From assembly GCA_964247055.1 (NCBI GenBank), contig OZ176056.1:3410001-3474000 (forward strand): 64,000 nucleotides of DNA, written 5' to 3'. The notes under the pieces are model-generated. The model did not search any database. It was not told the origin of the DNA and saw only the letters and a program-made list of their open reading frames with translations. The stretch's first letter is position 1, and each line of letters begins with the position of its first letter. This document shows, one piece after another, positions 34,288 to 57,849 of this stretch. This stretch comes from Paragordius varius (Eukaryota; Animalia; Nematomorpha). The translations under genes and the position numbers were made by a program.

Positions 34288-37200
34288 TTATATATAAATT
34301 GGTTTATTTGTATTGTTATTCATATTAATATTAGTGTTGTGATATTGGAGATTATTGTTATTAAAACCGCTGTGGCTTCGGAATTCACCCGATAAATCTG
34401 TATTATTGTTATGAGTGTGATAAAGGGATGGATCTATATTATTTGATAGTAAAAAGTTTTCTAATGCAGTCATATCGTCTTCCGACATCAAACCGTTCAA
34501 CGGGCCTTCATTAACCGAAGGTGAATTTGATAGTTGGTCTCTAAATAGTGAATCATACGGGCTATCGACCAAACTATTGTTATTCATGTAATTAGCATTC
34601 TTCTCTGTAAGTGTATTGGTTGAAACTGATGCATTTAAGTTTTGTGGGAAATTAAAGTTTTTATGAATGGTGGCGGCTTCCATGTGCCCATTATTCGTTG
34701 ATGCTGAGATCTGATTACATGAGAAATGGACTGCCTGACCGGTCCCCTGACCATCAGGCGGACTTTTCTCAGGTGTAAGCAGAGAGGGTGAATACTTGAT
34801 AGGTTCGCGACATGGTATAATATTTAATTGTTGTTGTTGTGATTGATTCTGAGCATTTTGATAAATATTCGCGTCCTGCGTCGTTTGATGATAATAGTAA
34901 TAATGAGAATTTGATGGGACAGGAGCCATGTTTGGATAATAATTGCCTTTATTAACATTGTAATTATTAGGTACTGAGGTTACTGAAGTTACGTTAAGGT
35001 GTGTTGGAGGTGGGGTAATTTCACCCAAAACCTCGGCGGCAGATTGCTGAGATAGCGGTTTATTACTGTTTGTCATTACAACTTTTTCCGTTGTTCCTTC
35101 GGATGGATTTAGTGGAGTGCTGCTAGCACAAGTTTTAGATTGGTTGGCTTTCTTAGACGATTTTGTTGTATTACCACTGCCTAAGGTGTTTTTGTTTGGG
35201 GGTGAGTTCTGTTGATTATTAGGTTTTGCAATTTCCAATATCGGGTAAAGTTTAGCTGTACAACGGGTTCCGTTCTGGACTTGAGTTGCAGATTTATTGC
35301 TATTTTGTGTACCTGTGCTGGAGGCGGGTGATACTGCAGTGATTGAACTACTATTATTCTTTTTATTAATATTCTTATTTATTTCTCGGAGTGGAATTAA
35401 ATCATGATGATGATGATGAGCTTTAGAATTTGGTATCATTGTTGGCGGGCTATTCGCCGTATTTTCATTTAATTTGGCCACTACCTGATAACCATTTTGT
35501 ATGGCTGGAGTAGCAGCAGTATTATTCGGTAAATGAGCCTCTAAAAGACTCAAAGAATTTTTCCATTTCGCATTATTGGTGCCGCCACCACCGTTATTAA
35601 GATCAGACGACGACCTAGATTCAATGAGTTGACAAATATCCATATGCATTCTTTCTCGTGCAATATCGCACGGGAGCATATCGACATTGTTCACAATTTC
35701 AGTGTTTGCTTTGTATTCTGAGGTGAGAATACGAGCAGATTCGAATGCCCCCTCCCGAGCGGCTAAAAACAATGGTGTTTCATCCTAACAAAAGAGATAA
35801 ATTTTTAAAATTAATATATATTGTAAAAAAACTATATTGTTGCTTGTAAAAATAATTTAATATGCATGAAATAAATATTTTCAAAATATTTACCTTGGCA
35901 TCTTGTACATCTGGACTGGCTCCATTTTTGAGAAGTAGCTCAACCATATGGTAATTATTGACCGCTGAAGCCCAATGTAAAGCAGTTCGACCTAATCATA
36001 ACACAAAAATAAATAATAAAGAGTAATCAATTATTTAGTATTTTAAGTTATGGGTTATTAATGTTATCGGAAATATATATATTTACTGATTAGAATAATA
36101 AGAAAAAAAAGAATAACTTTCTACATTTCTTATTTTCGACCCAAAAATAGGTTATATTTCATATTTCAAAAAATTAAGGTTAAAAGAATTTGTTTCATAA
36201 ATAAAGTATTGTCTTTAAAATTTGTTTGATTATCATTTTAATTTTTATTGAAACCTCTAGCCTAAAAAACACGTAAAAGGAAAAAAAATATTTTAGTAAA
36301 TGTCAGCAGGAAACATTAACATACCATTTTCATCTAGGAGGGTTAGATCGGCACCCGCTTCAATGAGTAGGGAAGGAATAGGTGAATCATTAGAACATAT
36401 GCGGGCAGCTAGCATAAGAGGTGTACTTCCATCCAAACTTTGTGCATCCAAATCTAAACCTATAGTTATTTGGGCGTAAGCATTATTATAAAAATCTCAT
36501 GTTGTTTATTTTGAATTGAGTAATACGTCGTAATTGATTCAATAATCTTATATAGTAAAAATGTGTTGCAAACGAAAAATGAAACAAAAAGAGAATAATT
36601 TATGTTTTAAGTGTGGCTAAAACATTCATTATATTTAATGTTTTATGAAGCAAAATTCGTGATAGAATTTTTAAAATAAAAAAATCACAGCTGTACAACA
36701 CAAATGGCTTTTGAGCGCATTTTCTAATCAAAACAATCCGACGGCCCGCCTCTGCAAAATAGGCATCAAAAAATATTTAATTAGATTTTATATATCAGAC
36801 TGTAAAAAGTACTATTTATTTTAAAATTTTTTGCCAGTTAATTGCCAAAATTCGGAAAGATTTTTGCAGAAATTTTGTTATGACAATCAATTTAACTTAG
36901 ATTATATTTTGTATGTGAAATTTCTCGCGGGCTGCACAAATATTTTGGATGCGTGCTGGACACCCCAGGCTTAAATCATCATTGTACAAATGATATTTGA
37001 CCTGATATAATGAAAATAAAAACTAACCAAAATATATATAAATTAACTACCAATTTTTGGTTGTTTTTGGTGATGAGATTCTTTAACGGACTCAGGACCG
37101 TTGAGTAGAGATTTATTATTATTAGTAGCTGTTGTTAGACCTTTATTATTAAGGCTAGGGGATGATGAGTTAACATAACGCAAAAGTAAATGAATAACTC

Positions 37201-40200
37201 CAATGGCATCACAAGCTATAGCGGTGTGAAGTGGCGTCCTACCCATATAATCTGTGGCATTTAGATCGGCGCCTAAATCGATCGATTGAAATGAAATGAT
37301 ATAAAATGTCATAAAAAATTATAGGTAAAGAAAATGAAATTAGGCAAATATATGGTTTTTAATATACTTTAAAATCATATATTCTTTATTTTATCAAAAA
37401 TTTATTTTTTTTCCGTTAAATGGATATAAATATTTGGAAAAGAATGGAAAATATAAGATCTCTATGGTAATTCTTATACCTTTTTGACAAAAATGATATT
37501 GATAATACCATAGAGCTCTTGTTTTTTCCATTCTTTACCAAATATTAATACCCATTTAATAAAAAAAACTTTTGCAAAATAAAGTATACATGACTGTAAA
37601 GTATCATTTACCGATATAAGATTATAAAAAGTTGGTACATCAAAAACATTTATAAGGTTAAAGTCAGATTCAAAATCTGCCTAGAAAGCTTTGCAGATAT
37701 AATAATCAATATAACATTATTTTTCAACGACTAAACATTCAATATTCCAAATAAAAAAGTAACATTTATAACGCTTTTAGTTTTATATCACACATAGACA
37801 CGTAAAAAAGTGATAACTATATAACTCTTTTATAATCAGATCATCAAAAGGATTTGGTACCAATCTTTTCAAATGTGATAAAATCATACCAGCTTCAAGC
37901 AGGTATCTAGCCGAATCTGCGCGCGCAAAACGTGCTGCTAAATGCAAAGGAGTTTCTAGGGTGTCTTCCGTTTTGTGTTCAACATTCGCGCCTTGTTTTA
38001 TAAGCGTATGGATTGCTACATTAGTTGTCGACGATAGCTCATTCTCATTATTTATCTTTCCATCCTGACCGGTGTTTACAGCAGTAGCTGAAACCATTAA
38101 AGGTGTTATGCCACGTGGGCCTAGGGCATCGATTTGTTCTGGAGTCATAAGATTCGTATTTGAATTTAAATTAAAATGCGGGGCTTGCCATGGTTTACTA
38201 TCAAGTTCCAAGCTAACCCAAGCAGGGGGATGCTGGCCATTAGTACTATGCTGTAATACTTCAGGAATGTAAGAATATTCTGCAATGGGAAGTGTTCTAC
38301 ATGTTTCGCCAGTATCGATATTATTATTGGTATGTATGTTACTATATGCAGGTTGTTGCATATTTCTAAAATGATAAATGATAAAGTAAAATTTACGAAT
38401 ATTAAATCTTAAACATATTTGTGTATTTGATAATTTTAGCCAATTTAATTAACTTTTTACCTCAGATCCTTTTATGGTTGTCAGGAAATATAAAATTTTA
38501 TTATAATGCAAATTAACCACCCTGTCCTAATATTAGATTTAATTTAAAGAAATATAAACTTAGTATGATTCACATTCAAATAAAATTTAGCCTATACTAA
38601 AAAGATCATGGAATCGCTGCATAAAAAAATACTAAAACAATGAAACAATGTGATAAATCCGGGTGATGATCCATATAAAAAAGTTAAAAGAAAATCTAAA
38701 TTTTATCATTTAACCAAAACATACACAAAACAGAAATTAAAAAGGCAAAGCATGCCCACCTTTCATTTGCGTTTGGGTGCGGTGAGGAAGTTACAAATTT
38801 TTTGGTGCCATCCGATTTTTCATCATAATTATAGTAAGGATACTGTTGTCGCTTATCCGTCGTCATGTTATTCTCGTCACCTTTGCAGTAATAATAATTA
38901 TTCTGGCAATTGGAATTGGAATTATTATCACTAATCATATGAATCAGGGCTGGGTTATCAATCGAAACAATGTTTGAAGGTGTCTTTCCAGACAAATAAT
39001 CATTAGGCCGCCCAATTTCACTCAGGCCCAGAAGAGTTTCTACATTAGCGGTAATGCCCATGGGTGAAGCCGAATATACATTAGGGTTAGCTAGCGTTTT
39101 ACGTTTAGCTTTTAGCATAAATCTTTCATTCATTGAAGGATTTATTGCAGGTGGGACAAAAAAATCTAATCTGCACTCTTTTCCGATGGCGCCAGCTGTA
39201 GTATACATTATAGGATCGTTTTCTTCATTCTCCTCGTCATTTAATATGTTGTCCCACGAATTATTGGGTTGTTTATTTGCGTGCCCTTGATTTCCCCCTT
39301 GTTTCATATCATTTCTTGGGGCTGTTGACATACTTATTGCTAAAATAGAAACGAATCAATGGTTAGACGTTTTTAAAGTAAAAAGTTATTTTTTTGTGTC
39401 TGCATGTTTTAAAAAATAACTTTTTTGTTATGATGTTATAGTATACTACACTATATAATAAAATTAACAATTTTTTTTCCACAGTTATATCTTTAAAAAT
39501 ATGCCCGAAAACCAATTCGCCTTCAACATATTCAATCATAAATCATAACTTGAAATGGTTTCAAATATTTATGTACACAGATTTTAATTTTTAATATTTA
39601 TATTTAATGAAAAAAACCATTCATACCTGTTCCCGTTAACGTTGAAGCGCTATCATCAAAATAACCATTTTCCTCCCCATAATAATCCAATCTGGGTGTT
39701 TGACCGGCATCAAATCTGTTGTAAAGTTGATCTTTGTAATAAAAATCTGGATATTTTTGCTGTTGATGTTTTAGGTTTTGAAAATTTTGATTTGGATAAT
39801 GATGAAATTGTTTTCCTGTCCCTATTCCTGCTTTTTGTCGTTTAGCACCCATGACAGGCATAAAATCTTCGGTATCATGCATAGGTTCAACAAATGATGT
39901 ATCCTTCATTGATTTATTCGTCCCATTATTGGTATCTCCGTATGCGCGATGATCAAATTTAACGATGTTTTTAAAGCCTTCCGGGAACCAAGTTATACCT
40001 CGACTTAAGCGTTTTCGTTTAGTGTTGGTCCCTTTAACAGTGGGTGTTTGATGATGATGGAAACTGGTGTACATTACCCCAACGATGAGTGTAAGCAAAA
40101 GTAGTATAATACAAGCTATAAAGGTTGCGGTCAGCTTTCCAGTTGAACCAAATATACTACTACTGGTCTTATCATTGTTAATGCCGTTTATATCGTCCCC

Positions 40201-42631
40201 ATCATTTGTATAGCTGTAATCTTTGCTGCCTATATAGATGCCAAGAACACAATATATATGTAATTATGCATTCGACAAATCAAAAAATAAACCGTTCACA
40301 ACGCTTATGTATAATTACGGACAAAAAGCAGTAACCATGGTAACAAATGTAAAAAATATGTGTGCGTACACATTAAAACAAATGAAGTTGACCGATATTT
40401 TTTAGTTTTTAAAATATATATTAATAAAAATTTAAATGTTGTAAATTTTACCACTTATTATTTGAAATCAGTTCCTAACTGCTTATTTTTATAAACATAT
40501 CTACAGTCACGATGATATATGTTATAATTAATTAAAAAAGGCGTTTAGATAAAATCTAAGAAAATCATTTAATTTTCGATTGTAATTCCAATTATAGCCA
40601 CATAATTTTACCAGAAAAAAACTCTGCCTCCTAAAATTAATGCCGAGCTTATTGAGTATATAGTATGTATATCAAAATTTAAATTATAAAACAAACCTTA
40701 ACTACTAATAGACAAATGTTTTTTATAAAGATAAACATTGTTTTAAAACCTAAATGTCATTAATAAAAGCCTATAGTTATGAACTGAAAGAGGATGAATA
40801 GAGATGTAAATTGGTAATATCTCACAAATGTGGCCATAAATTTTATGGTAAAGAAATCAAGCTAAAAACAGTTTGGCTGTTTTCACAAAAATCTGTCTTT
40901 CTACGATTTGTTTTATATAAATCAATCCAAAATACATACCTTGAACAGATATTAGAGCAGCTAATTGGGGTGGCAACTTTTGTGTAACCGCTCGGGCGGC
41001 AATTAAACGGGCCGCCTCATTCACATCTATATTACAGGAGGCGGGAAATGCTGATTGTTCAGAAACCAAACTTTTGCCCACAAAATTTCGGCGATTAAAA
41101 ATGCTGTATGAGGAGGAGGATTTATCATCTTGATGACATCGGGAATCGGGTGTAAGTTTGAGAAAAACCTATAAAACAAATTATTTAATAATATATGCTT
41201 ATTGTTTAAATTGGCTATCATTACCAACTGTTTCAGTCCTGGGGTGAATTACATATTAGGAGTATTTGATAAAACTTAAGTACTTAATAAAAAATGTAAA
41301 ATTATATGATTCTAATTTTTTATATTAGTCATGTTTCCTTAGCAGAAAAATGGGACAAAATATATCGCCTATGTTTGATGTGATATATGAAGGTTATATG
41401 GATCGTTTATATTTTTGAGTTTAATTAACAAGTATAGGAGACTACTTTTAATTATATTTAATTTTCCTTTATCGTATCTTACGGATTTTAACAACTTTTA
41501 TCACAAAACATAACCAATCCGTTATTTACCATTACTTTTAATTATATTTATCCAAGCCCACACATCATTAATTTATTAACGAAATTTGTATAAAATCATC
41601 GCGTGTTCCATTAAACTCACTTATTTATATACATTCATTTACCTTAGATCCAATTATGATATCTTCTTCAGTGTCACGATTGTCATTATTTGTTGGGGTA
41701 GGCGTATCTGGTTTTAGCGGTGAAATATGGCCCTTTTCTAGGATGGTTGGAAAAATCATAGGGTTACCCCATCGATCCACTTGAAACGAAACATTAACCC
41801 GCAATAATTCAGATAGGCTTCGAAGAATTTTGACTCGGTTTGCATATTCTTCCGCATCTAAATGGGCATAATTTTATTAAAAGGTTACTCTTTCATAATA
41901 AATTCAACATCCTTAAACAAACTTCTTAAAAATCTCAGACAAAACCTTATTTTATTAGCACAATATGTGGAGAGCGAATCGAAAACCATTCATTTTTCTC
42001 GGTTACAATTCAACATTCAAAATTTAATTAATGGGTTTGTTTCATACATTTAAGTAACTTAATAATACCTGGAACAGTATCGAGAGAAAAACCATCATCA
42101 TCATCATTTGATTGGGCATCTTTATTATCAGTGGGTCGTTCTTCGAGCGCATTTAAGTCCTCTTTTAAAACTATGACAAGACTCCCCTCTTGGAAAGTTG
42201 GTTGAGATTCCGGTTTTTTATTGCTATCCTCATTGTTGCTGGGTAAAATATTTGTATTGTTTCGAACATTTGGTATTGATTGGCAATCGAAACCGTCAAA
42301 AAGACAACCCCGATTATTGCATTGGGGATCACACCTGTCATCACCATACAATTTCCAGCACGGTTCAAATCGTAACGGTAAACCTGGATCTATTTAATAT
42401 TAGATTTATAAATACCATTATACTGTAAAATTAAAACATATATTTTGTAATTAAATGTTCTTTCATATCCCAAAAAAAGTTTACATATAGTTTGAAACAA
42501 ACCATTACATACAAAATTTCTGTTGTTCGACATTTTTCTTCAAAGAGAAAAACAATTATAGCAAAAAGCTTGTAAAACAATGATCATTTTTACTTAATAT
42601 CTTGTTTAAAGTCTTCAATACCAACTAAATA

Positions 42632-42668
<37 letters not shown>

Positions 42669-45600
42669 TGACAAATAATCCAAAGTTTTATTTGCAAAAA
42701 ATAAAATTAATTTTACCGTAAAGCGATAAAGTAAAATCAGGGACACATTTATCCCAAGGATCAACTCCGAAAGAACAATCCTTCCCGTCCCAATTACAGG
42801 CGGCAACATTACATTCGGGTTCACAAACGCCGTTAGCAAGCATAGTTTCTGGCCTGGGGCATCCGGCTTTGCGACAAACCTAATATAGTTTGAAAAAAAT
42901 ATTTAATTTTTGCATTCAAATTGAAGAAAAAATATATTATATCTATTTGTTGGTGGACATAAATTCAGGGTGATTTTGTAAAAAATTAATATATTTTTAA
43001 TTACAAAGAAATACATATTTATGGGAAATATAGTTATTAAAGAATTTTAAAGGTATAATGAGTGTAATTAATAACAAATATTTAAATGAAATACTTTTTA
43101 AAAACTAATGGACAAAAGTCTTATTATTCTATTCATGCCCGCTTTTTAACTGTGTTTATAAAATTAATTATTCGAAAAGTGTAAAAAACTTACCAATAAT
43201 TTGTGTTGTTTTTCAAGCTCTTCATACGTTGTATGTGCCTTAGATTTGTAATAACTAATCAAATTTTCAACTATATCCGTATTATCAGTTATATTATTAT
43301 CAATAAAATTTTGTGACATTTTATGGCATCGAGAAGCATTATTATCGTTTTCCTCCGGTTGTTTAGAAGAATGGACTTCTATCGTGTAATCAGAATCACA
43401 AAAACATCTACGATCTCCCATGTTTTTGCTATTTTTTGATGATAAGTGCAAAGGATCCAAGCAGTATTCATCCGTGCGGCAAGGATGTGTTTGACATGTC
43501 CGAACAATTGTGTCACAATATTCACCAGACCATGGTTTTTCACATTGACATCTAAAAAATAATGAAACACATTGCAAAAAATTATTTTGATATACCATTT
43601 ACAGTTCAATTAATATTTGAAAAATTCAAATTCACCCTTGAACAATTCAAATTGATCATTGAACAATTCAAATTCATCCTTGAACAATTTATGTGTTTTC
43701 GAACTAATCAAACTCTTTATTAAATATAAATATATCTTTATAGCATAATTCATATTTTTTTCAGTATTATTTTAATTTAAAACAAAATTATAATTTGTAA
43801 AAAAAATATAAAAACATAAGTAATTTTTAATCTTAACATATAATTTATTTAAGGGTATATTTGAATTGTTCAAGAATGAATTTGAAATGATTTAGGGTGA
43901 ATTTGAATTGTAAATGGTATAATAACGAGGAAAGAGAATGAAAGATTTAATACCTATATTCTAAATACAATCATAATGCTTTTGCAAAAATATCTATATA
44001 AATTAGTAAAATGCTTATTTATTCACATATGCTGTAGTTAAAAGAAATGAAGGTACAAGTATTTTCCATATCGGAAAAGAATATTTTTGCTATGTATCTT
44101 CCTTATTTTAAAATTTACTGTTATAAAACTAAACTGCGGTCTTGTGTAGATTTTTTCAAACTTTTAGAGTTTAGAAGGCTATATTTTTACATTTTGTCTA
44201 TATAATTTCATTTTTTACCGTATTTTTGCAAACTTACCTAAATCCCTTGTAGGAGCGTGGATCAATTAAACATTTTGCATTATTTGCACATTTATTTTGT
44301 CGGGCATGACAAACATCTGTTTTAGTGTCACACAATTTCCCCGAGAATCCTGGCTGGCAAACGCATTGGAAATCATTGTCAAGTTGAATGCAATCCCTCG
44401 TTCCCACCGCATTACATGGGTGAGCTAAACATTCATTTACATCACCTTCACAACTAAATAGGTTTGAAAAATGAAAAAATTTTAAAAAAAATTATATTAT
44501 AAATATAAAAAAGATACAAATTCAAAGAAGAATCGGTATAATGAAATGGAAAAATTTAAAAAAATATCATTATTAATATAATTATATATAAAAAATCTAT
44601 TATCCCAAAAACGGTAAAATTTTATTATCAAATTGTATTTTTATGGCAAACACATATTTTTCCTATCACTATTCATGTTTTAGAAAATATATTATTATTC
44701 ATCTAACGCTACAGTTGTAAAATTTAACATACTCTCATAAACCATTGTGATAATTAGCAATCTTTTAATCGATAAAATTGGTATTTATAATATTTTTTTC
44801 AATATTAAGATTTAACATATTATATCATCATATTATAAATTTTACATCAATCTACTCAAAAAACTAAAAAAAAAACGGTAGAGAAATTACGTTTTTCCAA
44901 CGAAACCAGGTGGACAAATGCATTGAAAACCACCAATTTTATCGATACATGTTCCCCCATGATGACACATAACGTTTGAGCATTCATTAATATTTGTTTC
45001 ACATAAAAATCCCAGAGTTCCTGGCGGGCAGGTACATCTAAGGCAAAAAATTAAAATTTAAAAAAAATACCTAGAAAGATATATATTTTTTTTATAATTG
45101 GGTAAAATATACTTTATTAAACTGCTCGAATTTGCCTAAAACTTTTTTTATTTTGCAACCAAAAACAATGAGTTATATTTAAAAAAGCAAGGTTTGAAAA
45201 ATATGGTTGTCTTAAATATTAATATATGTTGATGAATTTATAAATAATAATTGCAGAATATCAAATGAGAACGTTAGAACGTTTTTTAAATTGCAAATTA
45301 ATTTTTACCATTAAAGGTTAATGGTTTATATATTGTCCATATAATTAGTTAGTTAACTACCATTAATATTTTCCTTTATGTTTCTTCATATTCCACTTTA
45401 AAATAATGATATTTTAGAAAATTTCAAACTATATTACCGAAAATCATTTATTAGATCATGACAAATTCCACCGTTTTTGCATGGGTTCCCTTTGCAATCA
45501 TCTATATTTCTTTCACAGTTAACACCTATATAAATTATGGAAACAAACAAAATTTTAAATAAGTCCAAATAAATTTAGAAAAAGATTGAAAAATTAATAA

Positions 45601-48600
45601 TATACCATCGAAACCAGAAGGACATTCACATAAATAATTTTGAGCCTTGGGTATTTGTAACTTTGTATTACTTTGTTCAAAAATACTGGAAGCAAATATG
45701 TGAGCGGTTGATGAACGAATTAGGCGTGTATTAATACACGTAGCTCCATTCAAACAAGGATTTCTAACATTATTTTCAAGAATATAGAAACTAAAAGTAT
45801 GGCCTGAAAAAAGAAATTTTCAGTTTATAAATACTTTTAAATGAAAATTTTACAAGAAACGGTAATCCAATAAGTCTCTAACTTAAAGTCGAGTATATAC
45901 CGATTCTAAGTATGAGTAACAAGGCTATAAACCACATTTATATCTCTTTTCTTAAATAGATTTAAGGTTTAAACTTTTGTATATATACTTTATCTGACAC
46001 TCATCATCCATAATTTCACAATGGGCCCCAGAATAACCCGGTGAGCATTGACACTTGTAGTAATTAAATTGTTCCGATGATGATCCCAAAGATAAGGAGA
46101 TGGCAGCATTTGTCGGAATAACGATATCAATACATTTCCCGCCATTGGCACAAACTGATTGACCCTTTTTAGCTTGTCGCATGGTTTGACATGAGACCAT
46201 ACGGATTTCACATGTCTCACCTAAAAATTATTAAATAAATAGTATAAAGGTGATATAAAACTAAAAAAATATAATTCAAAAAAGGCGTAAAAAATTTATG
46301 TTAAAAGATATAACCAATTATTAATAAAAAAACAAGACGATCTAAACTATTTTTATTATTGGTATTATAAAAACCAGTTTTACACTCAAATAATATTTCC
46401 AAAAAAAATTAAATAAAACTAAATAATGTTGACACAAAAACGAGGTACGATCAAAAAATATACCTATCCACCCCTCGGCACATTTACATTCAAAAAGATT
46501 TTGATTATGATCTTCGGGATTCCTGCGATTATCAGCATGATTGTCATTGAGTGGGGTACATATACCACCGTTTGCACATGGGTTCCTTGAGTTACCACTT
46601 TTTTGTTTCGTTGCAGTTAAGTCACCAAAAAATTGCAATTGATGATGAGAATCTATGGAACCGTCATCATAGTGTGGATTACAAGGATTGATCCATTTTT
46701 CACAATACATCCCATAAAAACCCGGTGGACACACGCAACTAAAATCACTTCCGGTCACCGGATTCTTAGCTACATAAGAACTTGCCTTTGAAGTATAGTT
46801 TTCATTTAATTTTTCTAGGCCAATATTAAAACTACCACCAACACCACCATATGATCGGCAGTATCCACCATTTTGGCAGACGATTTTGCTGGGCACGTGA
46901 CACGGGTCAACACGTGACTCACAATGTTTTCCTTGGAACCCAATTGGACATAAACAACTATAATCGGCAATCCCATCAATACATGTACCTCCATTCAAAC
47001 AAGACGTAGCACTGCAATCAGCTGAATTAATGTGGCATCTCTGTCCTTCCCACCCAGCTGAACATTCGCAAACCCAGGATGCCACGTAATCTAAGCATCT
47101 TCCATTATGTAGGCATGGACCTTTGCCATACTTGCCCAGGGGCGTAGTTATAACGGTCTTAGGGTCAGACGATTCATAAAGGTGATAATGGTTATGTTTG
47201 GAAATGTTGCTGACTAAAGCCGCATTGTTTTGTAAAACATTTTTATTATTATATGTGTCATAAAGTTGATGAAGTTCAAGCAATGTTAAACCTGTAAAAT
47301 GGAAAAAAAGGTTTTATTAAATATGTTAAGTTTTGGTTTTTTACCGCAAATCTTAAAAAATGAACATTCGGGTTATTCACAGATAATACCCAGTCAAGCA
47401 AATAATTTTAACTATAAAACAATTAAATTAGTTATCATAATCACAATTTTTCCATTTTTTGCATTCAATTATCTACACGACTATTATGTTATACACATGT
47501 TTAAATATTTTTTACTGTATACACAAATTCTATTGCTGTCTTAAATGCATATATAACCGGTCAGACATGTTTAAATATTTTTTACTGTATACACAAATTC
47601 TATTGCTGTCTTAAATGCATATATAACCGGTCAGAATCAACCGTAAAAACACGTATAAATACAGATGCTTGAAAAATAAATTGTAACTAGTAAGGTTTGG
47701 AATCTAAAACCACTATATAACTCAAATCAAAATTTGTTTTATGCAATAATCGATAAAAAGCAATATATATCTTTACCTTTTACAAGATTATTTCTTGCCA
47801 ACCCAATGTATTGAGACTTTTCTGGATTTTGCTCATCATTAGTTTCTACTAGTGGGTAATAGAGTTGACATTCATCAATTTCTTGTTCACACTTTTGCCC
47901 AGTGAAACCGGGTTTACATTCACATTTCCAATCTCGCCCGATAATAAAGGTGCCATCTATATCAGCTGATCTGGACGTCGTCGATGTTTCAATACATGTA
48001 CCACCATTGTTACATGGTCCAGCCATCATAGGCATAACGAGATTAGAATTGGCAAAAATTTGGTTTATTTCATACTCTGGCATATCTTGAAGAGAAAGTC
48101 CATTTTCTAACAAAGTTACTTTCATACAAATCGTTAAATTTCTCGATTGTTCTTCTTGTTTGCCATTTATATGGGGCGGCAAAAAATTCTTTGGAAACAA
48201 CGAAGCATAAGAAGAAGAATCGTTTTTATGCCTAGTTGATGTTGTTGTAAGGAGGTGTGTGGAATTGATTTCACAAAAAACCCCCGTAAACCCGGGTTGA
48301 CATTGGCAAACATAACGGTATGCGTGGTATCGATACATTGAATACTGCAAAATTTATGAATAAAATAACATAATTATATATATTTTTTATAAATTGAAAG
48401 CAACACAATTTAACATTGAATAATATGTAAACTCTAAAAAATGGCCTTTGGATTATTTATTAAGTATTGTCTTTAAATAAAATTGTACTGAATGAAAAAG
48501 GGCTTTTATTATATTTGCTTAAATTTACAAAATATTATGTATACGAGTAATTATCATATTTATTATATAGCTTTTTTTTGCATTCAAAAGCAAATATTAA

Positions 48601-51600
48601 CATTAAAAAATGTAAACTCTAATAATGAATCCTTGTTAACAAAAAGTCTCCTTAAATTTAAAATATTGTTAAATATCGTTTCCAAAACAAATTTAGAATA
48701 AATTGTAAATAGCCCTAAAAAATAAGTATAAAACTTACCTTTATGGATAAATCAATGCATTTGGCATTATTGAGGCAAGGATTTTGCCTCGGTTCACATT
48801 GCATTCCATCCAATATTTTATGGAAAGTAGAACTCGCCATTTCTCTATTTGTATTCTCATTTGTTGAAGTGTTACTACGGTCAAAATTTTGTTTACGAAT
48901 TTCTTCGAATTCACATCGTGGACCATAGTATGGCCACGTGCAATTACATTTGAATCGCATAGATCGATTTTTCACGTCAAAATTCGTTAAAATATTTATG
49001 ACATTTTCATCATACACCTCATCATTATCATTGTAATACGACATATTTTGATCGGTTTCAGAATCGTAGGAGCTTAGGGATTTTAAATTCTTACTACTGC
49101 TGTTATTATTTTTGTTTGTTAAAAGTATTTCAGTGCAAATTCCACCATTGAAACATGGTTTCGACATACTGTTTGATCTGTCATCATAATTGTAATTGTT
49201 AAAATGTTTGTTCATGCCCACGAAATTTTGGGGTATACAGGGATTAATCTCCAAATCTTTCGTATCAAGTTGATATTTTTGTTCACAAATGTCTCCATAA
49301 TAACCTAAAAGTTAAAAACAATCGAAATTATTTGTAAATTTAAATTTAAATATTTAATTATAATAAAAATTACTTTTAAATTAAGGCTGTTTAAAAATGA
49401 CTCTATTTTAAAAAAAGTAATGTTTATAAGGACAAAAGATTGATAAAATTAGTGAATCGTGGGCAAAACGAATTCAAACCAAAAAATTACAAAATTTTCA
49501 GACTTATATGTTTAGTAATAAAATTATATAAAATTATTGTTAATAGTATTAATTATTTTATCAAGAAAAAATTAGTAAAAAAACCTGCCGGACATCGACA
49601 AATAAAATTATCAATCCCATCAATACATAACCCATTATTGTGACAAGGGTTGGGTTGACATTCATTTATATTGACTTCACAACGATCCCCCGTGTATCCA
49701 GGCATACAGACACAGGTATATTTATCTAAAAAATATCAGTTAATTTTATGTTTTAAAATAAAAGATTTAAAAAAAAGTTTAAATATAGTTAAAGTCGCAA
49801 AAAATAAGAATATAGTAAAAGTTTAAAAAATACTTTTGTATGATATAAAGATCAAAATCAAAAATAAGTGTAAATTATATATATGTTTTAAGATGAAAAA
49901 TTTTAATATGTAAATTCAAAAAATACTTTTTTATAATATAAAGATTAAAGAAGAACAATATTAAAATTAAAAATAACTGTAAATTATATGTTTTAAGCTG
50001 ATATAAGATTTTTGATAAAAGTTTAGAAAAAAAATATAAAAGTTTAAAAATTATGAATATTAAATTCAAAACTTTTTTATAATTAAAAGATTAAAGGGGA
50101 AAAATATTTAAATCCAAAAATAACTGTAAATTATATATATATGTTTTAAGTTTAAAATTTTAATTATAAATTTAAAAAATATAGTACAAGTTTAAAAACA
50201 ACCTTTTTTTAATATAAATAAAGGTTAAAAATATTTAAATCCTAAAATAACTGTAAATTATATATATGTTTTAAGTTGATATAAAATTTTAAATATGAGT
50301 TAAAATAATAATATTAAAAGTTTATTAAATTGAAATTAAATTCAAAACATATTTTTTTATCATATAAAAATCCGAGATGAACATTTAAATCAAAAATAAC
50401 TCTAATTTTCGAACAAACATTATATAAGATAGTGTTAATAATATAACTCTACTTTTTTAAATGATAGAACTTACTTTTCATTACATAATATATATAAAAA
50501 CACAATTTTTCCAAAATTTAATTACAATCATGTATGTTTAGAATTGTTAAACATACGCTTTTAATTGATTATACTTTGTATTTAATTATTTACAATAAAT
50601 AGCCTCTTATTATTTTAAGGTTCAAAAATGTGCATGTAGAAAGTTGACATATCAAACACCATATCATAACAATTAAAAACAAAGTATAAAATCAATTAAA
50701 AACGTATGTTTGACAATTCTAAACATACATGACTGTAATATAACTCTACTTTTTGTGAATCATAAAACTTACTTTTCATTAAACACATTTTTTCCAAAAA
50801 ATCCAAATTACAATCATGTATGTTTAAAATTGTCAAACATACGTTTTTAATTGATTTTGCTTTGTATTTAATTGTATAAATAGGCTATTATTATTTTAAG
50901 GCATAAAAATGTGCATGTTGAAAGTTGACATATCAAACATCATATCATAACAATTAAAAATAAAGTAAAATCAATTAAAATCTAAACATACATGACTGTA
51001 GATTATAACTCTACTTTTTTGAATCATAAAACTTACTTTTCATTACATAATATTTATATAAACACCATTTTTTCCAAATAAAAATCAAATCAAATCAAAT
51101 TATAAAATTAATAAGTTGAAAAACCATACTTATTTCATCTAAACAGGTGCCATCATTCAAGCAAGGGTGTACGGCGCATTCATCATTATTAATTTCACAC
51201 CGCGGTCCGCTAAAACCGGGTTCACAAGCGCATTCAAATGCTCCGCGGGTATTAACACACGTACCTCCATGTTCACATGGTAACAAACCTTTTTTTTGCG
51301 GTTAAGACAAAATAAAAATCAAAAAATGTTATTATCAAATAAATTGGAAATGTATTTTGAATATTTTTTGATCTTATTATTATTGAATTTTGTATAATTT
51401 TATGTGCAAAGCGTATAATAAAACCTTTTTTTTACTGAATTTTTTAAAGGATATGTATCAAATGAAAATCAAACTCCATTAATATATAATCAAATTTATT
51501 AACATACATTCTAAATCCTATTTATTGTATAATATCCCATTTATAATTCTTTAGGTTAAATCTCTAAAAAGTGAGGAAAGGTATTTCTTCCATGTATGTT

Positions 51601-54600
51601 TATGGATTGTAGGATATTAAACATTATATTTAAAATTCCAATTTTTATTATATCCCGTAATTCTATTTAAGAAATTATTACAAAAATTTTACATTAATCG
51701 CTTCCAAAAAATTATTTTTGTTTTAGCCTATTTACGGTTAAATTACACGCTAAAGCCCTATAACTCGCATACTTAAATAAAATTCAAACAAAATATCTCA
51801 AGTTATTTTTGAGGTAAATGTCACATTTGTTCACTAATACTATGATCTAAAAAACAATTCCCTATAACATATTAATTTTTTACAGGTGTAAAAAATCGAA
51901 AAAATCAAGTTTAAAATTTACCTAGCTGACATTCATCAATATCAATGTCACACAGGGGGCCCTCCATCCCAGCTCGACAAGTGCATTGAAAATCTCCGTT
52001 TATGTAATTCGTTTCACACAAACTTCCAGGTCCACAGGGGTTAGCGGTCTCACAAACATCCTCGAGGTGACATAAAAGACCGGTTTTTCCGGCCGGACAT
52101 TCACAGTAATAGGAACCGATTCGGTCATGACATATACCTCCATTCATACAAACCTGACATATAATGATTGGTAAAAATTAATTCCTTAACGATTTTGGTA
52201 CCAAGTGATTATTTAGATTAAAGCAACTCATATTTTAGTAGAGAACTAAAAGTTGTGAAAAAAAATTATACATTCTATTAAATAAATTTTCAAAATATCC
52301 TATTGATACTTTAGTCAAGTTGAACTTTAAAGGTTTAAAAATAATCAAAATTACGAAATTGACAAGGTTTTGGAGTGCCGCTTGTTGCCTAGATTTAGAT
52401 TAAAGAATATCTTTGGCCCACACAAAAATTATGAGTATTTATCAAAAAAATGTTTAAGCAATAACTTTTACCGATATTTGAAGAATCCCTTTACTTTAAG
52501 GGTTTAAAAATAATCATATGCATATATTAAATTACCACATATATTTTCAAAAAGATAGATTACCGATGTTTGATTAGATCCGTCGGGGACTGCGCAGTCA
52601 TCGATATTTATGCTACAATCCTGACCGGTCCAACCATTAACACATGCACAGTAATGGGAACCGTGGGTATTAACACAGGTGCCTCCATTTTTGCACAGAT
52701 AATCTGTTCCTAAGATGGCACATTCATCCACGTCTTGTTCACAAAAGTTACCTTTGGTTTTACAAACGCAAAGTATAAAAAATAATCTACTTGTTTTAGG
52801 ACAAAAAAATGGGTATAAAATCTAATAAAATTAAATGATATTTAATTAATATAAAGAAAAACCTTGATTTATTGTGAATAAACATTTTTTGCGGTTATTT
52901 TGACATAAATTTATTTTTTACGGACAATTACAAAATATATTACTTTATGTGCCAGTTAAGTAAAAACAAATTTGAACAATTTTCATTGAATTTACTTTGT
53001 TGAAGGAAAAATACTGAAAAAAATTTAACAAAATAATCAATTTTTGAAAAACAACTTTTTATTTAGAATAATATACCTTTATATTGTGTTGGACATTGAC
53101 AAGTATAACTATTGACTCGATCTAGACATGTACCTCCATTTTCGCAACGGTGTCCAAGGGCACATTCATTAATATTAATTTCACAATCATTTCCAGAAAA
53201 CCCTAATATATTATTGTCACTTGTCAGTTTATTTACTAATGCTTAGAAAAATGCAAGTATTAAATATATGGTTCTTTTATTGGACACAATATTACTTAAA
53301 AAAGGGGAATCTTACCTAAAAAAATTTGATCGCCTTTGAAAATCAAAATTTAAATTTCTATCCATTCTATATTAGATTAAACATTATCAATCATAAATTT
53401 TGGGTAGCGAAATAAGTATTAATGATGTGTAAATTGGTACCATACTTAATTGTTTATTACACTAATATGTAGTTTATAAAAAAAAAGTCTTTTATCTTTT
53501 ACTTAGGTTTTTTTCCTTGAATTTTTTATTTATCAGAAAATTATTTACAAGTTTTGGATAAAAGTTAAAAAAGTATATCTTTGCATATAAGAATACTACA
53601 AAATACGTCATAATCAAATTTAAACATATTTTTCTTATAAATTAATTTTTTACCTGGTGGACATTGACAGGTGTATTGATAATCACCTGTGATGACACAA
53701 ATCCCATTATGTTGACAGGGGGATGGATTACATGGGTAGTACGGTTTTTCACAATGTTCCCCCGTAAATGCAATCGGGCACAAACACCTTTTTATTTATA
53801 TGGCATAAATTTTATAAAAAAATTATCAAAATTACAGTAAAAATTGGTAAAATAATTATAAAATTAAGACATATTTAAAAAAACATTTTTTTTAGATGTG
53901 TACTAACGTAAAATAAAATAATATGTATTGGTAACATACCCAACTAAAATTTCACAAATGTATTAATTTAAAGGTTATTAATAAACTATCAATGTTTTAA
54001 CTAATATGGTTGCTTTTATATGTAAAAAGCATGCTTGTCTTTAGTTTTTACGTTATGTCATTTAAATTATTTTGTTTTTACTGTAAATCATACTTATAAG
54101 ATCCAGGAATATTTAGACAAGTACCATGATTAAAACATGGTGGTTGACTAAATTCGTTTTGTACGTCGCATTCATCTACATCTGATTCACATCGTCTGCC
54201 AGTAAAACCAGACGGACATTCACATGTGATTAATTCTTCTGAATTTAAATTTTCTAGAATAGTTTTTTCGGTTAATTTAACGATGGCAGTGCGATTCAAA
54301 AGACATTTTCCATTGTTTTGACAGGCAGCGGCATTTGTGTTGTGATGACAGGGGTTAGGTATCTCACAGTTTTTGCCTTTGTGTTAAATTATATTTAATA
54401 TTAGAATATTGAGATACTACTATGAGATTATTATTAATTTAATCTTACTCAAACCAAAAGTCACAATAAAGTCCTAATATCAACTAACTTTCCAATAATT
54501 TGAGAGACTCCATATATTCTTATAAGAAACAAGTTTAAAAAACCAATAAGTAACCAGAACTTAGTTGGAAAAACCATAAAACAATGACTTAAGACTTCAA

Positions 54601-57600
54601 TATGGGAAGCTGTGCAAATATTTATGTGATATTAAGACAATTTTTTATCGTTATTTGTCGAATAATATCCAATTACCTATATGACTCTCCGGACATTCGC
54701 ATTTATAGTTCTGTGGATTTTCATCTATGATAAGGCACTTTCCATGATTGCGACACGGTCCTTGAGTAATTTGTCTAATCTGTTCGGTATTATCATTTAC
54801 GGCAAAAGCTTGGTGACAAATATTATCGTTCGTTGGTATGTCGCAATATGTTCCCGAATACCCTGGACTACAGTGGCATTTAAAAAAGGGCGGGATCTTA
54901 TTTAAATTTGAGTTTGAATCAAATATGATTTGACAATTTGAGTCATGTTTACATTTTTGAGCAAATTTTATTCTTTTAGCAGTGTTGTGAAAAAGATTTT
55001 TGCGACGCAAATTTTTAACCCTGTTGTAGTTGCCAGTATGATTGATATGAAGGCAAGGATTTAGAAATTGACATCTTTCACCTACTGCCCAATCTGGACA
55101 TCTATATTTCAAATTTAATATTAAAATAAATTTAATAATTATATTGTTAATTTGCAGCATGATTTAAAGAAATTTCTAGATTAAGTTGTCATATAAATTT
55201 TATTAGCAGAAACATTTTATGTGTAATTTTCGGTTGATTCGAAAAATGAATGCCTCATGTTCGGTTTTAGCGGATTTTTAACCGTTAAAAACCTAACAAA
55301 TGAATTTTTGATTAATATTCATGTCGGCTTCTTGTTAATATATAGTCTTGAAATATGACGTTCTAAAATGGAAATTAATTGTGCCCTAAAAAATAATCAA
55401 AAATAATTAATTAATTTTAAAATTGAACAATTTTAAAGTACACGATTATCCCCATTTATTCCTAAAATTTTGACATTCTTGATCGATTAATTTTATTAAA
55501 CTCTAAAATTTATTTAAAAGACCTATTAGAAAAAAAAAAGATTTATTTATTAAATTTATTTGACAGTTTGGTTCAGTTCGTCGACTTGGTTTTATTTTAT
55601 GATCTCTTTTATGTTTCAAAATCCTTTACGTATTCATTTTTATAACTTTGGGCAAAATTAAAATTACAAAAAAAATATGTTTAAAATGTATAGTAATGAA
55701 ATGTACTATAGAGTTCATAAATTTCAAGTAGGGTGTTCACGTTATAAATTAAAGTAGTACTTTTAAAATAAAAAATTGTATCCCTCGATTGTCAAAATTC
55801 TGGGATTTAAAATTTTGTTTGTCCTTAAAATTTTGGTTATAATTTACTAAAAACTATATAAAATTTGTACTTTGTTTGTTAAATAAACAACTAAGAAATA
55901 TTAAATAATAACTGTTAATTAGAGTAAAATTTTCTCTTTCCCACGTCCAAATAATATAGGAAGAAAGAAAGAAAATATAATTGTTTTACAAAAAAATAAT
56001 TAAAAGTTAAATATTTTAAACAAAAAAATATACAATAATAATTACACAACTTTCTTTGTTTATGTGCGCATTAAAATTACTTATTTTAAAAACAAGTTTT
56101 TTTTGTTTAAATTAATTATATTGAGTTCAATATTATTGAAAGGCTATTTAGGATTTAACAAAGAATAATAATGATATTTAAAGTTAAAGTTAGTTTTAGA
56201 ATATTTTAAGCACAGAAAAAAATTTGAGGTAAAGCAAAAAATAATAAATAACACTTTTGTGGCAAAAAGGATTTCATATAATAAGTTATATTGATGAGAA
56301 TTTCACAAGTTTCTCTGAAGCATTATTTAAAATGGCTTTCGTGTTTGAGAAAATGCTAAAATTTTCTCAGCAATGAATCTTATTATATATGATAATAAAT
56401 ATGAACAATCACCTTTGTAATGTTAACAACTTTGTGTTGGAAAGGGAATAAATAATTTTATTTTCTAGCGTTATTAAGAGTAAAATATCCTATTATTGAT
56501 TTAAGGAAACTTATCAATAAAGTAATGATTGATATAATATATGCATATAATTTTAAATAAATTTATGCATATTGACCAGTTGTCGTAAAACAAACAAAAA
56601 AGTTTAAAACTTAGGACATTATTTCCTTTAAATTATGTTAATTTATTTCTTCCGCTAAACAATGTAAATTTAATTATCAAATACTACATTAATTTTTTGT
56701 GCGAAAAAAACCATATTGGTAGCAAGCACAGACTAATGAAAATGTGTGTATGGTTTCACACTTAAAGATCTTAATAAAACTTCTTTTTTTATCAAATTTA
56801 ATTTATTATATATAAACAATGTGGTGAAATATTATGGTTATCTTTGAGTTAAAGAAACGGATTTGTAATCGAAAATTCCAAAAAAATACTAAACCAAAAA
56901 CGCTAGTGAACTTTAGAGTTTAAAATTTTTAGCCAATTCCCATATGTTTGCTTAATGCTTATATCTATAAAACCACAAATCCTATATATGCATAAAATAC
57001 TTTTGCATAACCCGATTATCACTAATTATTACTAATTGTATATTAGGGTTGATTTGTTTCCATAAAAGTTCTGATACCTTTGCTTAAAAGTTTTTTTTAC
57101 TAAAGAAAGAAAAAAATGAACAGGTGTGTTAATTTATAATACGTAAAACAAAAAAAAGACTTTACTGTAGTATTAAAATATTTTTATTTATTTTTTAAAA
57201 AAAACGAGGGTAGGATAACACTAGAAAGTTTATAAAAAAGGGGGAGAGATATAGACATAACATTATAAGAAAACAAAAGATGCTATCTAGATAAGGACAA
57301 TAGTATTCGTCACTTAGGTAAAAAATGATCTAAAAAAGCCAGGTGACAAATGTTAAGATACCAAAAAAAAAAATTGTAGGACCTATTTTTTTAATAAATA
57401 AAAAAATTTAGCCAAATATGATACGATATGTTTTATTAGGTTTTAGCTTGTAAAATGCTTAACTTTTGGTTTGAATTTCGGAAAAAAACATATGTTTAAA
57501 AATAAAATGCGGGATTTTCGAAATTATACGTCATTTTGATCAAATAAAACGGCGTAAATTGGTTTGAATTAAAAGTCAATCATCTATTTTATTTTAAAAT

Positions 57601-57849
57601 ATACTTGCAAATGTTTTGATTAAGTGTAGAATTTGTAATACAGCGTCCGTTATTTAGGCATGGAGTATCATTATCACAGTGATTTGAGTTTCCCGGTAAA
57701 TTTTGAATACCTAGCCAAAACATAAAGGTTTATATTCAAAAGTTAAACTAATATTGAAATTTAAACTGACGGAATTAACTTAATAAGCAAAGGAAATTAC
57801 CTGAAGCACTGATGAGTATTAGAAGTATGGCTAATAAAAGTTGTTTCAT
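34288..57849 (-). CDS. Notch: Notch receptor, complete gene, 30 coding exons, ~3189 aa
   Basis: Exons (all GT-AG, cumulative phases consistent, 9570 nt): 57801-57849, 57605-57710, 54677-55101, 54094-54376, 53654-53787, 53077-53202, 52564-52751, 51922-52153, 51130-51288, 49585-49725, 48739-49304, 47777-48344, 46464-47291, 45989-46220, 45606-45790, 45438-45525, 44891-45037, 44238-44453, 43194-43551, 42717-42879, 42069-42389, 41643-41857, 40940-41168, 39627-40229, 38760-39339, 37890-38365, 37051-37272, 36325-36459, 35894-35991, 34288-35784. Domain order: signal peptide, EGF array, LNR, HD, TM, RAM (WFP), ankyrin repeats, PEST. Confidence 0.97.
35600..38130 (-). CDS. Notch: Notch ankyrin repeat domain
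   Basis: [87 protein letters not shown]. Confidence 0.95.
37371..37596. mobile_element. Second copy of the palindromic MITE, in Notch intron 26
   Basis: Shares agaatggaaaa..tctatggta / taccatagag..ccattctttacc arms and the ATACATGACTGTA end with 8539-8751. Confidence 0.72.
39627..40229 (-). CDS. Notch: Notch transmembrane helix and RAM motif exon
   Basis: [22 protein letters not shown] then [16 protein letters not shown] (CSL-binding WFP motif). Confidence 0.93.
40940..42879 (-). CDS. Notch: Notch negative regulatory region: LNR-A, LNR-B, HD-N, HD-C
   Basis: [21 protein letters not shown] (LNR-A); [27 protein letters not shown] (LNR-B); GSLVIVL and [27 protein letters not shown] (HD-N); [23 protein letters not shown] (HD-C). 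Confidence 0.9.
43194..57710 (-). CDS. Notch: Notch EGF-like repeat region (27 repeats)
   Basis: Six-Cys repeats read across spliced exons. EGF11-12 ([39 protein letters not shown] / [38 protein letters not shown]) closely match canonical EGF11-12. Confidence 0.92.
43593..43919. mobile_element. MITE with TA flanks and 21-bp subterminal repeats, Notch intron 18
   Basis: ta|TACCATTTACA..TGTAAATGGTA|ta; repeated ttcaaattcacccttgaacaa; partial relative at ~33585-33700. Confidence 0.85.
47495..47634. repeat. Perfect 70-bp tandem duplication, Notch intron 12
   Basis: 47495-47564 is identical to 47565-47634. Confidence 0.95.
49860..50370. repeat. Degenerate AT-rich tandem repeat (~110-145 bp period), Notch intron 9
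   Basis: aaaataa(g/c)tgtaaattatat..gttttaag recurs near 49865, 49972, 50120, 50245. Confidence 0.75.
50432..51080. repeat. ~300 bp tandem repeat (2.3 units), each unit holding a palindromic MITE (50525-50735, 50811-50998), Notch intron 9
   Basis: Unit start atataactctactttt recurs three times; TIRs tacaatcatgtatgttt / aaacatacatgactgta. Confidence 0.85.
55938..55945 (-). promoter_or_regulatory. Candidate CSL/Su(H) site CGTGGGAA in Notch intron 2
   Basis: Exact high-affinity consensus (plus strand ttcccacg); motif match only. Confidence 0.35.
57605..57849 (-). CDS. Notch: Notch exons 1-2: signal peptide and first part of EGF1 (not in ORF track)
   Basis: [17 protein letters not shown]|[35 protein letters not shown], joining in phase 2 to [11 protein letters not shown] at 55101; 90-nt intron 1. 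Confidence 0.88.

Follow-up and report, generated by a model that had tools for sequence, protein, structure and literature searches.

A Notch gene in the Paragordius varius window

The window (the whole 64-kb stretch of Paragordius varius DNA that was analysed) carries a Notch gene on the minus strand at about 34.3-57.7 kb (Table 1). Exon junctions were predicted from GT-AG sites and reading frame alone, and all exons of the gene are open. The host genome is very AT-rich. The EGF-repeat region, modelled up to 57729 without its N-terminal exon, contains at least 15 complete EGF C-terminal signatures (strict regular expression), and its EGF10-12 equivalent (51131-52153) showed 54-58% identity to fish Notch1 in tblastn. 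The RAM motif follows a hydrophobic helix and was matched by the RAM of mite Notch in tblastn. Downstream of the transmembrane helix and RAM lies a complete seven-repeat ANK domain, the exons of which are collinear with residues 1674-1957 of fish Notch1 (tblastn), and the C-terminal IYI end is the same as in other Notch proteins.

LNR, EGF, and ANK form the diagnostic set of Notch receptors (Gazave 2009, PMC2770060), and the gene encodes tandem EGF repeats, LNR modules before the membrane, and the transmembrane helix, RAM, and ANK. On its predicted translation, the gene is a genuine animal Notch, with its parts in the same order as in Notch1. An earlier reading of the DNA (the sequence-only reading) had described the receptor as intact outside its LNR region, which is supported by tblastn, the ANK frames, the NRR alignment, and the comparison of last exons. 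Lineage-specific insertions are many, comprising the LNR-B loop, an acidic insert in HD, a 33-residue Cys-Cys loop, and N-rich tails.

Table 1 Predicted features of the Notch gene in the 64-kb window
Feature	Positions	Strand	Basis
EGF-repeat region, many exons	43194..57729	-	ORF scan; tblastn, collinear with Notch1 (P0100) residues 24-1181
Exon with LNR-A (six Cys), A:B linker, and first Cys of LNR-B	42717..42879	-	PF00066, E 4.5e-10
Intron, 327 nt	42390..42716	-	Stops in all frames; GT..AG ends
LNR-B Cys 2-6, ending CLFDGFDCQ	42280..42389	-	PF00066, E 8.1e-11
Spacer, 31 codons, in the place of LNR-C	42187..42279	-	Translation; MAFFT alignment
HD-N start: beta-1 GSLVIVL and acidic insertion	42069..42186	-	Same open exon; aligned with nine Notch proteins
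HD-N exon: helix alpha-1, beta-2, GNPMIFP, loop	41643..41857	-	PF06816; alignment; splice sites and frame
HD-C exon: beta-4 GSKVFLKL, Cys pair, alpha-3, beta-5	40940..41168	-	PF07684; alignment; exon model
Juxtamembrane stretch, transmembrane helix, RAM motif WFPEGF	39627..40229	-	Translation; alignment
Intracellular exons	34291..38364	-	Pfam Ank matches; tblastn
ANK repeats	37888-38364, about 37178-37282, about 36270-36440, about 35894-36000	-	
Last exon, C-terminal ...PIYI	34291-35784	-	Compared with other Notch last exons

The NRR contains LNR-A and LNR-B and lacks LNR-C

Two matches to PF00066, both exceeding the Pfam cutoff, were found before the membrane. The best PDB match of the first, whose exon is bordered by AG/GT splice sites, was LNR-A plus linker of NOTCH1 (26.4 bits versus 13.5 for B and 17.0 for C). 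The second was closest to LNR-B, both against the NOTCH1 modules (B, 36.5 bits; A, 10.9; C, 14.3) and against position-specific profiles (B, 44.1 bits; A, 22.5; C, 26.0). These scores indicate that the two predicted modules are LNR-A, with the A:B linker, and LNR-B. The linker contains a hydrophobic gatekeeper triad, F-G-V followed by DPW, and C-S-F-G-V-D-P-W aligns with C-S-L-G-I-N-P-W of the fly and C-S-L-N-F-N-D-P-W of fish. When the two exons are joined, the Cys1-Cys2 loop of LNR-B is 19 residues long versus about 5 in other Notch proteins. The intron between these exons holds a (TA)n microsatellite near 42640-42665, and sequencing contigs break at 42620-42673.

Of the canonical modules A, B, and C, only A and B are present. 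The remainder of LNR-B, the spacer, GSLVIVL, and the acidic stretch share one frame in the 321-nt exon 42389-42069, which is open and bordered by AG..GT; LNR-B and HD beta-1 are separated by 93 nt, leaving no space for a spliced-in module. The spacer has no Cys and is rich in N, S, P, E, and K. In a MAFFT alignment with nine Notch NRRs, the LNR-C columns were empty and the other NRR elements aligned. Pfam searches of all ORFs of the NRR region found no third LNR, the exon 42389-42069 giving a single PF00066 stretch, and none was detected at E<=10 when the A, B, and C profiles were run on the spliced NRR. An LNR profile built from 34 modules was also searched against all six frames of the 64 kb (hmmsearch, filters off) and returned only two LNR matches (1e-11 and 5e-10), the next best having an E value of 0.86. 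We also considered micro-introns of 20-33 nt within the exon; none of the six GT..AG candidates would add sequence, and the three in-frame ones would delete the second Cys of LNR-B, beta-1, or the last eight codons.

These results confirmed a two-LNR architecture from which LNR-C is absent. The sequence-only reading had proposed that only two LNRs are present and that no third could be spliced into the open exon, and both statements held in the Pfam searches, the matches to NOTCH1 structures, the position-specific profiles, and the six-frame search; a third LNR found by HMMs, which it had named as a refutation, did not appear. The uninterrupted Cys-free spacer leading into GSLVIVL was also found as described, with a length of 31 codons instead of 30. 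Its wording that LNR-C is deleted goes further than the absence itself, since a spacer of 31 residues, compared with about 50 in other Notch proteins, makes deletion indistinguishable from decay in situ.

Sequencing contigs and polymorphism at the spacer

An artefactual origin, in which LNR-C was lost by collapse during assembly or is encoded by an overlooked exon, was evaluated by placing Logan contigs from four public sequencing runs, carrying three organism labels, on positions 39500-45000. A contig of 220 letters was identical to the assembly over 42181-42384. Two further runs supplied contigs that span at least about 42166-42354 and differ only by SNPs and a 6-nt in-frame insertion located at 42235-42237, and no large insertion at the spacer was present among the contigs listed for the four runs. 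Three spacer haplotypes were recognised, one of them two codons longer; all are in-frame and Cys-free, and an N-x-T sequon is kept in each. Since the spacer is covered without a large insertion and its three haplotypes are in-frame and Cys-free, the absence of LNR-C is not an assembly deletion, and the refuting observation envisaged by the sequence-only reading was not encountered. The contigs are short (150-700 nt) and those listed are only some of them, which lends the artefact a little room. Against it stand the contig matches, the 93-nt distance in one open frame, the lack of an LNR-like ORF in any frame of the 64 kb, and the cost of the in-frame micro-introns in conserved Cys or beta-1 residues; we therefore regard it as scarcely tenable.

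Among the best-supported SNPs, a listed subset and not a full census, 19 were synonymous and 7 non-synonymous outside the spacer, versus 1 and 8, respectively, inside it (Fisher p 0.0019). Four of the five SNPs listed for the HD-N exon (41643-41857) were synonymous and one was non-synonymous. These counts show that the flanking exons are under purifying selection, and the overall pattern is consistent with a gene under selection in which the linker is relaxed.

The polymorphism data also bear on whether the window copy is a divergent or decaying paralog, that is, an incipient pseudogene or a specialised receptor accompanied by a canonical three-LNR Notch elsewhere. The protein has many lineage-specific insertions, planarians and some nematodes possess several Notch genes (PMC10970066, PMC6956190), and our search for Notch was confined to this 64-kb window, all of which leave such a paralog conceivable. 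However, the exons are all open, the SNPs outside the spacer are mostly synonymous, the EGF10-12 equivalent remains close to that of vertebrate Notch1, RAM and ANK are canonical, as is the C-terminal end, and most protostomes have a single Notch (PMC6956190). A paralog thus appears distinctly improbable.

The HD domain and the S1 and S2 regions

The elements of HD all aligned with the nine Notch NRRs. The match to Pfam NOD (PF06816, E 0.006) and the weak match to NODP (PF07684, E 0.12) were both below the curated cutoff. The acidic insertion after beta-1 consists of about 29 residues and is missing from other Notch proteins. The HD-N exon contains the motif ...ILRSLSELL...GNPMIFP, in which the L-R pair of alpha-1, a contact of LNR-C in human Notch, is kept. 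In the HD-C exon, the Cys pair is spaced by 33 residues, and beta-5 carries the S2-equivalent ...LISVQG. A sequence motif search found no furin S1 site (R-x-[KR]-R) between GNPMIFP and beta-4. Drosophila Notch is likewise without an evident furin S1 site; S1 cleavage is not essential in the fly receptor, which, without this cleavage, tolerates mutations of the HD core (PMC13436963).

Probable autoinhibition without LNR-C

In the textbook view, Notch is autoinhibited by three LNRs wrapped around HD; lesions of LNR-C are oncogenic or cause gain of function in humans and flies. Masking of S2 has been attributed to the LNR-A:B gatekeeper together with LNR-B (PMC4537882, PMC13436963), the gatekeeper role lying in the A:B linker, and both the gatekeeper mutant LGI-AAA and LNR-C mutants are gain of function (PMC13436963). 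The sequence-only reading had predicted an altered autoinhibition mechanism. This prediction was only inferential, and the published S2-masking elements are all retained in the hairworm protein; therefore, the gate itself is probably conserved, and any change would concern stability, threshold, or turnover. Judged from the retained residues, S2 is most likely still gated by the A-B cap, with an altered stability or threshold. Taken together, we think it rather probable that this gene is a selected Notch whose NRR has a flexible linker instead of LNR-C and retains autoinhibition with changed properties.

In such a receptor, LNR-A, the A:B gatekeeper (F-G-V, corresponding to L-G-I in the fly), and LNR-B would cover helix alpha-3 as well as the S2 strand, and LNR-B would be tethered to the first HD strand by a flexible linker of 31-33 residues that is probably N-glycosylated. 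If gating is canonical, endocytosis of the ligand would pull the A-B cap off S2. The brace between LNR-C and HD alpha-1 and the conserved surface of LNR-C, disruption of which raises basal signalling in fly and human, would be lost. It can be speculated that the 19-residue hydrophobic loop of LNR-B, the acidic insertion after beta-1, and the missing furin S1 site, by which HD would remain a single chain, compensate for this loss. The expected outcome would be a functional switch that differs in its mechanical threshold, basal activity, or turnover.

Total loss of LNR-C might abolish autoinhibition rather than tune it, because point mutations in LNR-C activate fly and human Notch constitutively. 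The NRR would then be leaky, with high and partly ligand-independent basal signalling, or the receptor would be restrained by other controls such as endocytic routing and turnover. Mutations of the HD contacts or Ca2+ site of LNR-C (fly l1N-B and 414; human D1546G) and of the LNR-C surface raise basal signalling (PMC13436963), and a salt bridge between LNR-C and alpha-1 adds mechanical stability (PMC4537882), the alpha-1 Arg being without a partner here. On the other hand, conservation extends to the gatekeeper triad, LNR-B, alpha-3, and the S2 strand, which were found sufficient for masking in vitro (PMC4537882), and the exons encoding LNR-A, LNR-B, and HD are under purifying selection, which suggests continued function. 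Weakened autoinhibition is thus considered unlikely, and gating by the A-B cap remains the preferred reading.

Comparison with other Notch receptors

Searches for close relatives yielded nothing by word search with the NRR exon, no usable match in the ESM Atlas, and no confirmed match in a metagenome scan. An exhaustive HMMER search with an ANK exon retrieved generic ankyrin proteins for the most part, along with 13 Notch proteins, all of them distant; the last exon retrieved only ANK7 of distant animals; and a word search with the fish Notch1 NRR, a poor query, gave almost only vertebrates. The literature searched contained no description of a naturally occurring Notch that lacks LNR-C.

The hairworm NRR shares with the canonical one (human NOTCH1-3 structures 3ETO, 3I08, 2OO4, and 4ZLP; Drosophila) LNR-A, the gatekeeper linker, LNR-B, and HD beta-1, alpha-1, beta-4, Cys pair, alpha-3, and S2 strand, followed by the transmembrane helix, RAM, and ANK. 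It differs in having a Cys-free, polymorphic linker of 31-33 residues in place of LNR-C, a six-Cys module of about 35 residues that has a Ca2+ site, in the longer LNR-B loop, and in two HD insertions, one of about 29 residues and the other of about 33. The LNR-C/HD contacts absent here are also perturbed by LNR lesions of engineered or mutant origin (fly l1N-B, 414, and LGI-AAA; human T-ALL LNR-C/HD mutations; LNR deletions; PMC13436963, PMC4537882). While these lesions arose by point mutation or by deletion in the laboratory and cause constitutive activity, the hairworm loss is natural and fixed in all read sets seen, and the gene is under purifying selection.

Two LNR modules only, as judged by Pfam and profiles, were also found in Notch of the dust mites Dermatophagoides pteronyssinus and Euroglyphus maynei (D. 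pteronyssinus KAH9425807.1 (P0152), E. maynei OTF72967.1; P0113, P0053). The mite receptors lack LNR-A and keep B and C, whereas the hairworm gene lacks C and keeps A and B. In the mite ORF, which is continuous, the last EGF leads directly into an LNR-B-like module; this is a fast-evolving lineage in which EGF, HD-C, the transmembrane helix, RAM, and ANK are intact. No paper describing mite Notch without LNR-A was found. The statement in the sequence-only reading that three LNRs are near-universal was thus overstated.

A tentative proposal is that the hairworm receptor is a two-module clamp, in which LNR-C is dispensable for a ligand-gated NRR that lacks furin cleavage and is braced by lineage-specific loops. 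If so, it would represent a mechanosensor minimised by nature, in which the force threshold or turnover is shifted, and together with the LNR-A-less mite receptor it would imply that three LNRs are not a strict requirement. A receptor that is under selection and otherwise complete but has no LNR-C would be evidence that parts of the lock can be dropped, and a natural test of what the lock requires. It would also offer a ready-made construct for assessing whether LNR-C contributes to the mechanical threshold, to HD stability, or to a degradation-linked surface (reported 2026), with relevance to minimal NRR designs and synthetic receptors. The canonical Notch architecture has been defined with 'three LNR repeats', and surveys that accept only proteins with three LNRs (as in PMC8166818) would overlook genes of this kind.

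A 'Notch-like' protein of Monosiga shares two LNRs with EGF, a transmembrane segment, and ANK; it has 1 EGF and 3 ANK, and its resemblance to Notch is only very weak (Gazave et al. 2009, PMC2770060).

Gene layout and number of LNR modules

The G+C content of the window (27.3%) agrees with that published for Gordionus montsenyensis (26.93%; bioRxiv 10.1101/2023.06.26.546503). Two exons of its Notch gene matched PF00066 in Pfam (E values of 4.5e-10 for the first and 8.1e-11, as a single stretch, for the second). The sequence-only reading had described a receptor with two LNR repeats, lacking LNR-C, whose LNR-B exon runs uninterrupted through a 30-aa Cys-free spacer into the HD-N strand GSLVIVL. 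The Pfam count was indeed two, and the LNR-B exon was open throughout. Since 93 nt in one continuous frame separate LNR-B from the first HD strand, nothing can be spliced between them. The spacer contained no Cys, as claimed, but its translation gave 31 codons rather than 30 residues.

Features of the window (window positions)
Feature	Position	Strand	Description
Notch receptor gene	about 57.7 kb down to 34.3 kb	minus	
LNR exon 1	42879-42717	minus	six-Cys LNR, linker C-S-F-G-V-D-P-W, one further Cys
Intron between LNR exons		minus	327 nt, GT..AG, with a (TA)n run
LNR exon 2	42389-42069	minus	321 nt; five more Cys ending CLFDGFDCQ, then spacer, GSLVIVL and acidic stretch
Spacer	42279-42187	minus	between CLFDGFDCQ module and GSLVIVL
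Acidic insertion	within 42069-42186	minus	ca. 29 residues after beta-1, lineage-specific
Further NRR exons	41857-41643, 41168-40940, 40229-39627	minus	joinable by AG..GT sites, phases consistent
HD cysteine pair	within 40940-41168	minus	33 residues apart, lineage-specific insertion
Last exon	34291-35784	minus	498 codons, mainly low-complexity, N, S, Q and T-rich, yet with conserved Notch C-terminal I-Y-I
Repeats in Notch introns	43548-44283, 41340-41707		
Duplication	57-1803, 19040-20786		near-identical, offset 18,983 nt
TMTC-like ORF in duplication	490-861, 19473-19844		exon-like, two residue differences between copies

An LNR profile built from 34 modules was run, with all filters off, against all stop-to-stop segments of at least 12 residues in six frames of the 64 kb. 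No third LNR was found by this search, which recovered the two exons only (1e-11 and 5e-10), the next match having an E value of 0.86; the HMM check proposed for a third module thus left the count at two. Three in-frame micro-intron candidates within the LNR-B exon were rejected: their excision would cost the protein the second Cys of LNR-B, beta-1, or the last eight codons, and would in no case add sequence.

An assembly deletion near the LNR-C position was checked by comparing 39500-45000 with Logan contigs from four public runs that carry three organism labels; the data consist of short contigs, not raw reads, and the best-matching runs may include the source sample. One contig was identical to the window over 42181-42384, the contigs of two other runs carried six substitutions and a net 6-nt insertion at 42235-42237, and those of the fourth carried three substitutions. 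No large insertion was listed among the contigs of the four runs over this region, and depth was even across the LNR-B exon. On translation, the three spacer haplotypes were all in frame and Cys-free, one being two residues longer, and they show the contigs to derive from more than one molecule. These observations argue against an assembly deletion, and the two-LNR architecture is confirmed. An N-x-T glycosylation sequon occupied the same place in all three haplotypes (NNT, NTT and NST) despite many residue differences.

Identity of the modules and intactness of the receptor

Against solved structures, the second module matched NOTCH1 LNR-B (36.5 bits; A, 10.9; C, 14.3), and the first module with its linker matched NOTCH1 LNR-A plus the A:B linker (26.4 bits; others, 13.5 and 17.0). 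Position-specific A, B and C profiles were built from 124 three-LNR Notch proteins and called the three modules of a control protein correctly; with these, the second module scored as B (44.1 bits; A, 22.5; C, 26.0), while the first was ambiguous by score alone (A, 25.7 over its full length; C, 28.9 over part only). Taken together, the profile and structure matches give A and B, and by these sequence comparisons the absent LNR is C.

The spliced negative regulatory region (NRR) was aligned with nine Notch proteins (fish, arthropod-like, mite and metagenomic). The LNR-C columns were empty and every other element lined up: LNR-A, the gatekeeper, LNR-B, beta-1, alpha-1 with its L-R pair, GNPMIFP, beta-4 (GSKVFLKL), the HD cysteine pair, alpha-3, the S2-equivalent strand (...LISVQG), the membrane helix and WFPEGF. 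The ANK domain was complete, the EGF10-12 equivalent shared 54-58% identity with fish Notch1, and the final exon terminated in ...PIYI, as in other Notch proteins. The receptor looks otherwise intact, as had been proposed.

Among the best-supported differences listed, SNPs outside the spacer in the modelled exon frames comprised 19 synonymous and 7 non-synonymous changes, versus 1 and 8 inside it (Fisher p 0.0019), consistent with purifying selection on the gene and relaxed constraint on the linker. Two non-synonymous SNPs sit in the insertion between the HD cysteines. The LNR-B Cys1-Cys2 loop, another lineage-specific trait, has 19 residues, across the inferred splice junction. No furin-type S1 motif (R-x-[KR]-R) was found in the loop of 41643-41857, where vertebrate Notch is S1-cleaved, and the protein probably remains one uncleaved chain, like that of Drosophila.

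Comparison with other Notch receptors and proposed mechanism

Standard descriptions of Notch have three LNRs (PMC2770060, PMC8166818, PMC13436963), and a search of the literature turned up no account of a natural Notch that lacks LNR-C. The number three had been regarded as near-universal, but it is not invariant: dust-mite Notch has LNR-B and LNR-C only (Dermatophagoides pteronyssinus KAH9425807.1, here P0152; Euroglyphus maynei OTF72967.1; related metagenomic ORFs). In these proteins a continuous ORF leads from the last EGF directly to an LNR-B-like module, and LNR-A is missing (P0152 residues about 900-1030; also the dust-mite-type proteins P0113, P0151 and P0053). Their HD-N looks shortened. 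The dust-mite proteins lack A and keep B and C, whereas the window gene lacks C and keeps A and B. The number of LNRs is therefore not fixed in fast-evolving lineages, which makes the present case more credible and somewhat less singular. The gene has the diagnostic LNR/EGF/ANK set, i.e. it is a Notch, and falls outside a 'three LNR' definition. Searches of the queried databases recovered no protein from P. varius or any close relative.

The S2 mask has been assigned to the A:B linker 'plug' and LNR-B; in vitro, cleavage required the removal of LNR-A, linker and LNR-B, and this removal was enough for it (PMC4537882). In the fly, the gatekeeper mutation LGI-AAA makes the receptor constitutively active (PMC13436963). 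Because F-G-V stands at the gatekeeper position, LNR-B, alpha-3 and the S2 strand are kept, and the mask has this published location, we infer that the S2 gate is retained. LNR-C normally braces the HD domain through a salt bridge to an alpha-1 Arg (PMC4537882), mutation of its conserved surface raises basal signalling and receptor stability, and LNR-C lesions cause gain of function (fly l1N-B and 414; human D1546G) (PMC13436963). Without compensation by the new loops and the single, uncleaved HD chain, its loss should therefore alter the mechanical threshold, basal activity or turnover. Since S1 cleavage is not essential in the fly and HD-core mutations do not activate the receptor there (PMC13436963), a single-chain HD would, by analogy, be a plausible buffer against LNR-C loss. 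The interpretation is supported on architecture and is a proposal on mechanism. With this natural construct, the role of LNR-C, which has long been discussed, can be tested directly.

Other features of the window

The two intronic repeat regions had contig depths of 1e5 to 2.5e6, versus about 600 in their neighbours, and many rearranged joints; they are therefore extremely abundant repeats, satellite or transposon. The duplication listed in the table includes an ORF that resembles an exon of a TMTC-like gene.
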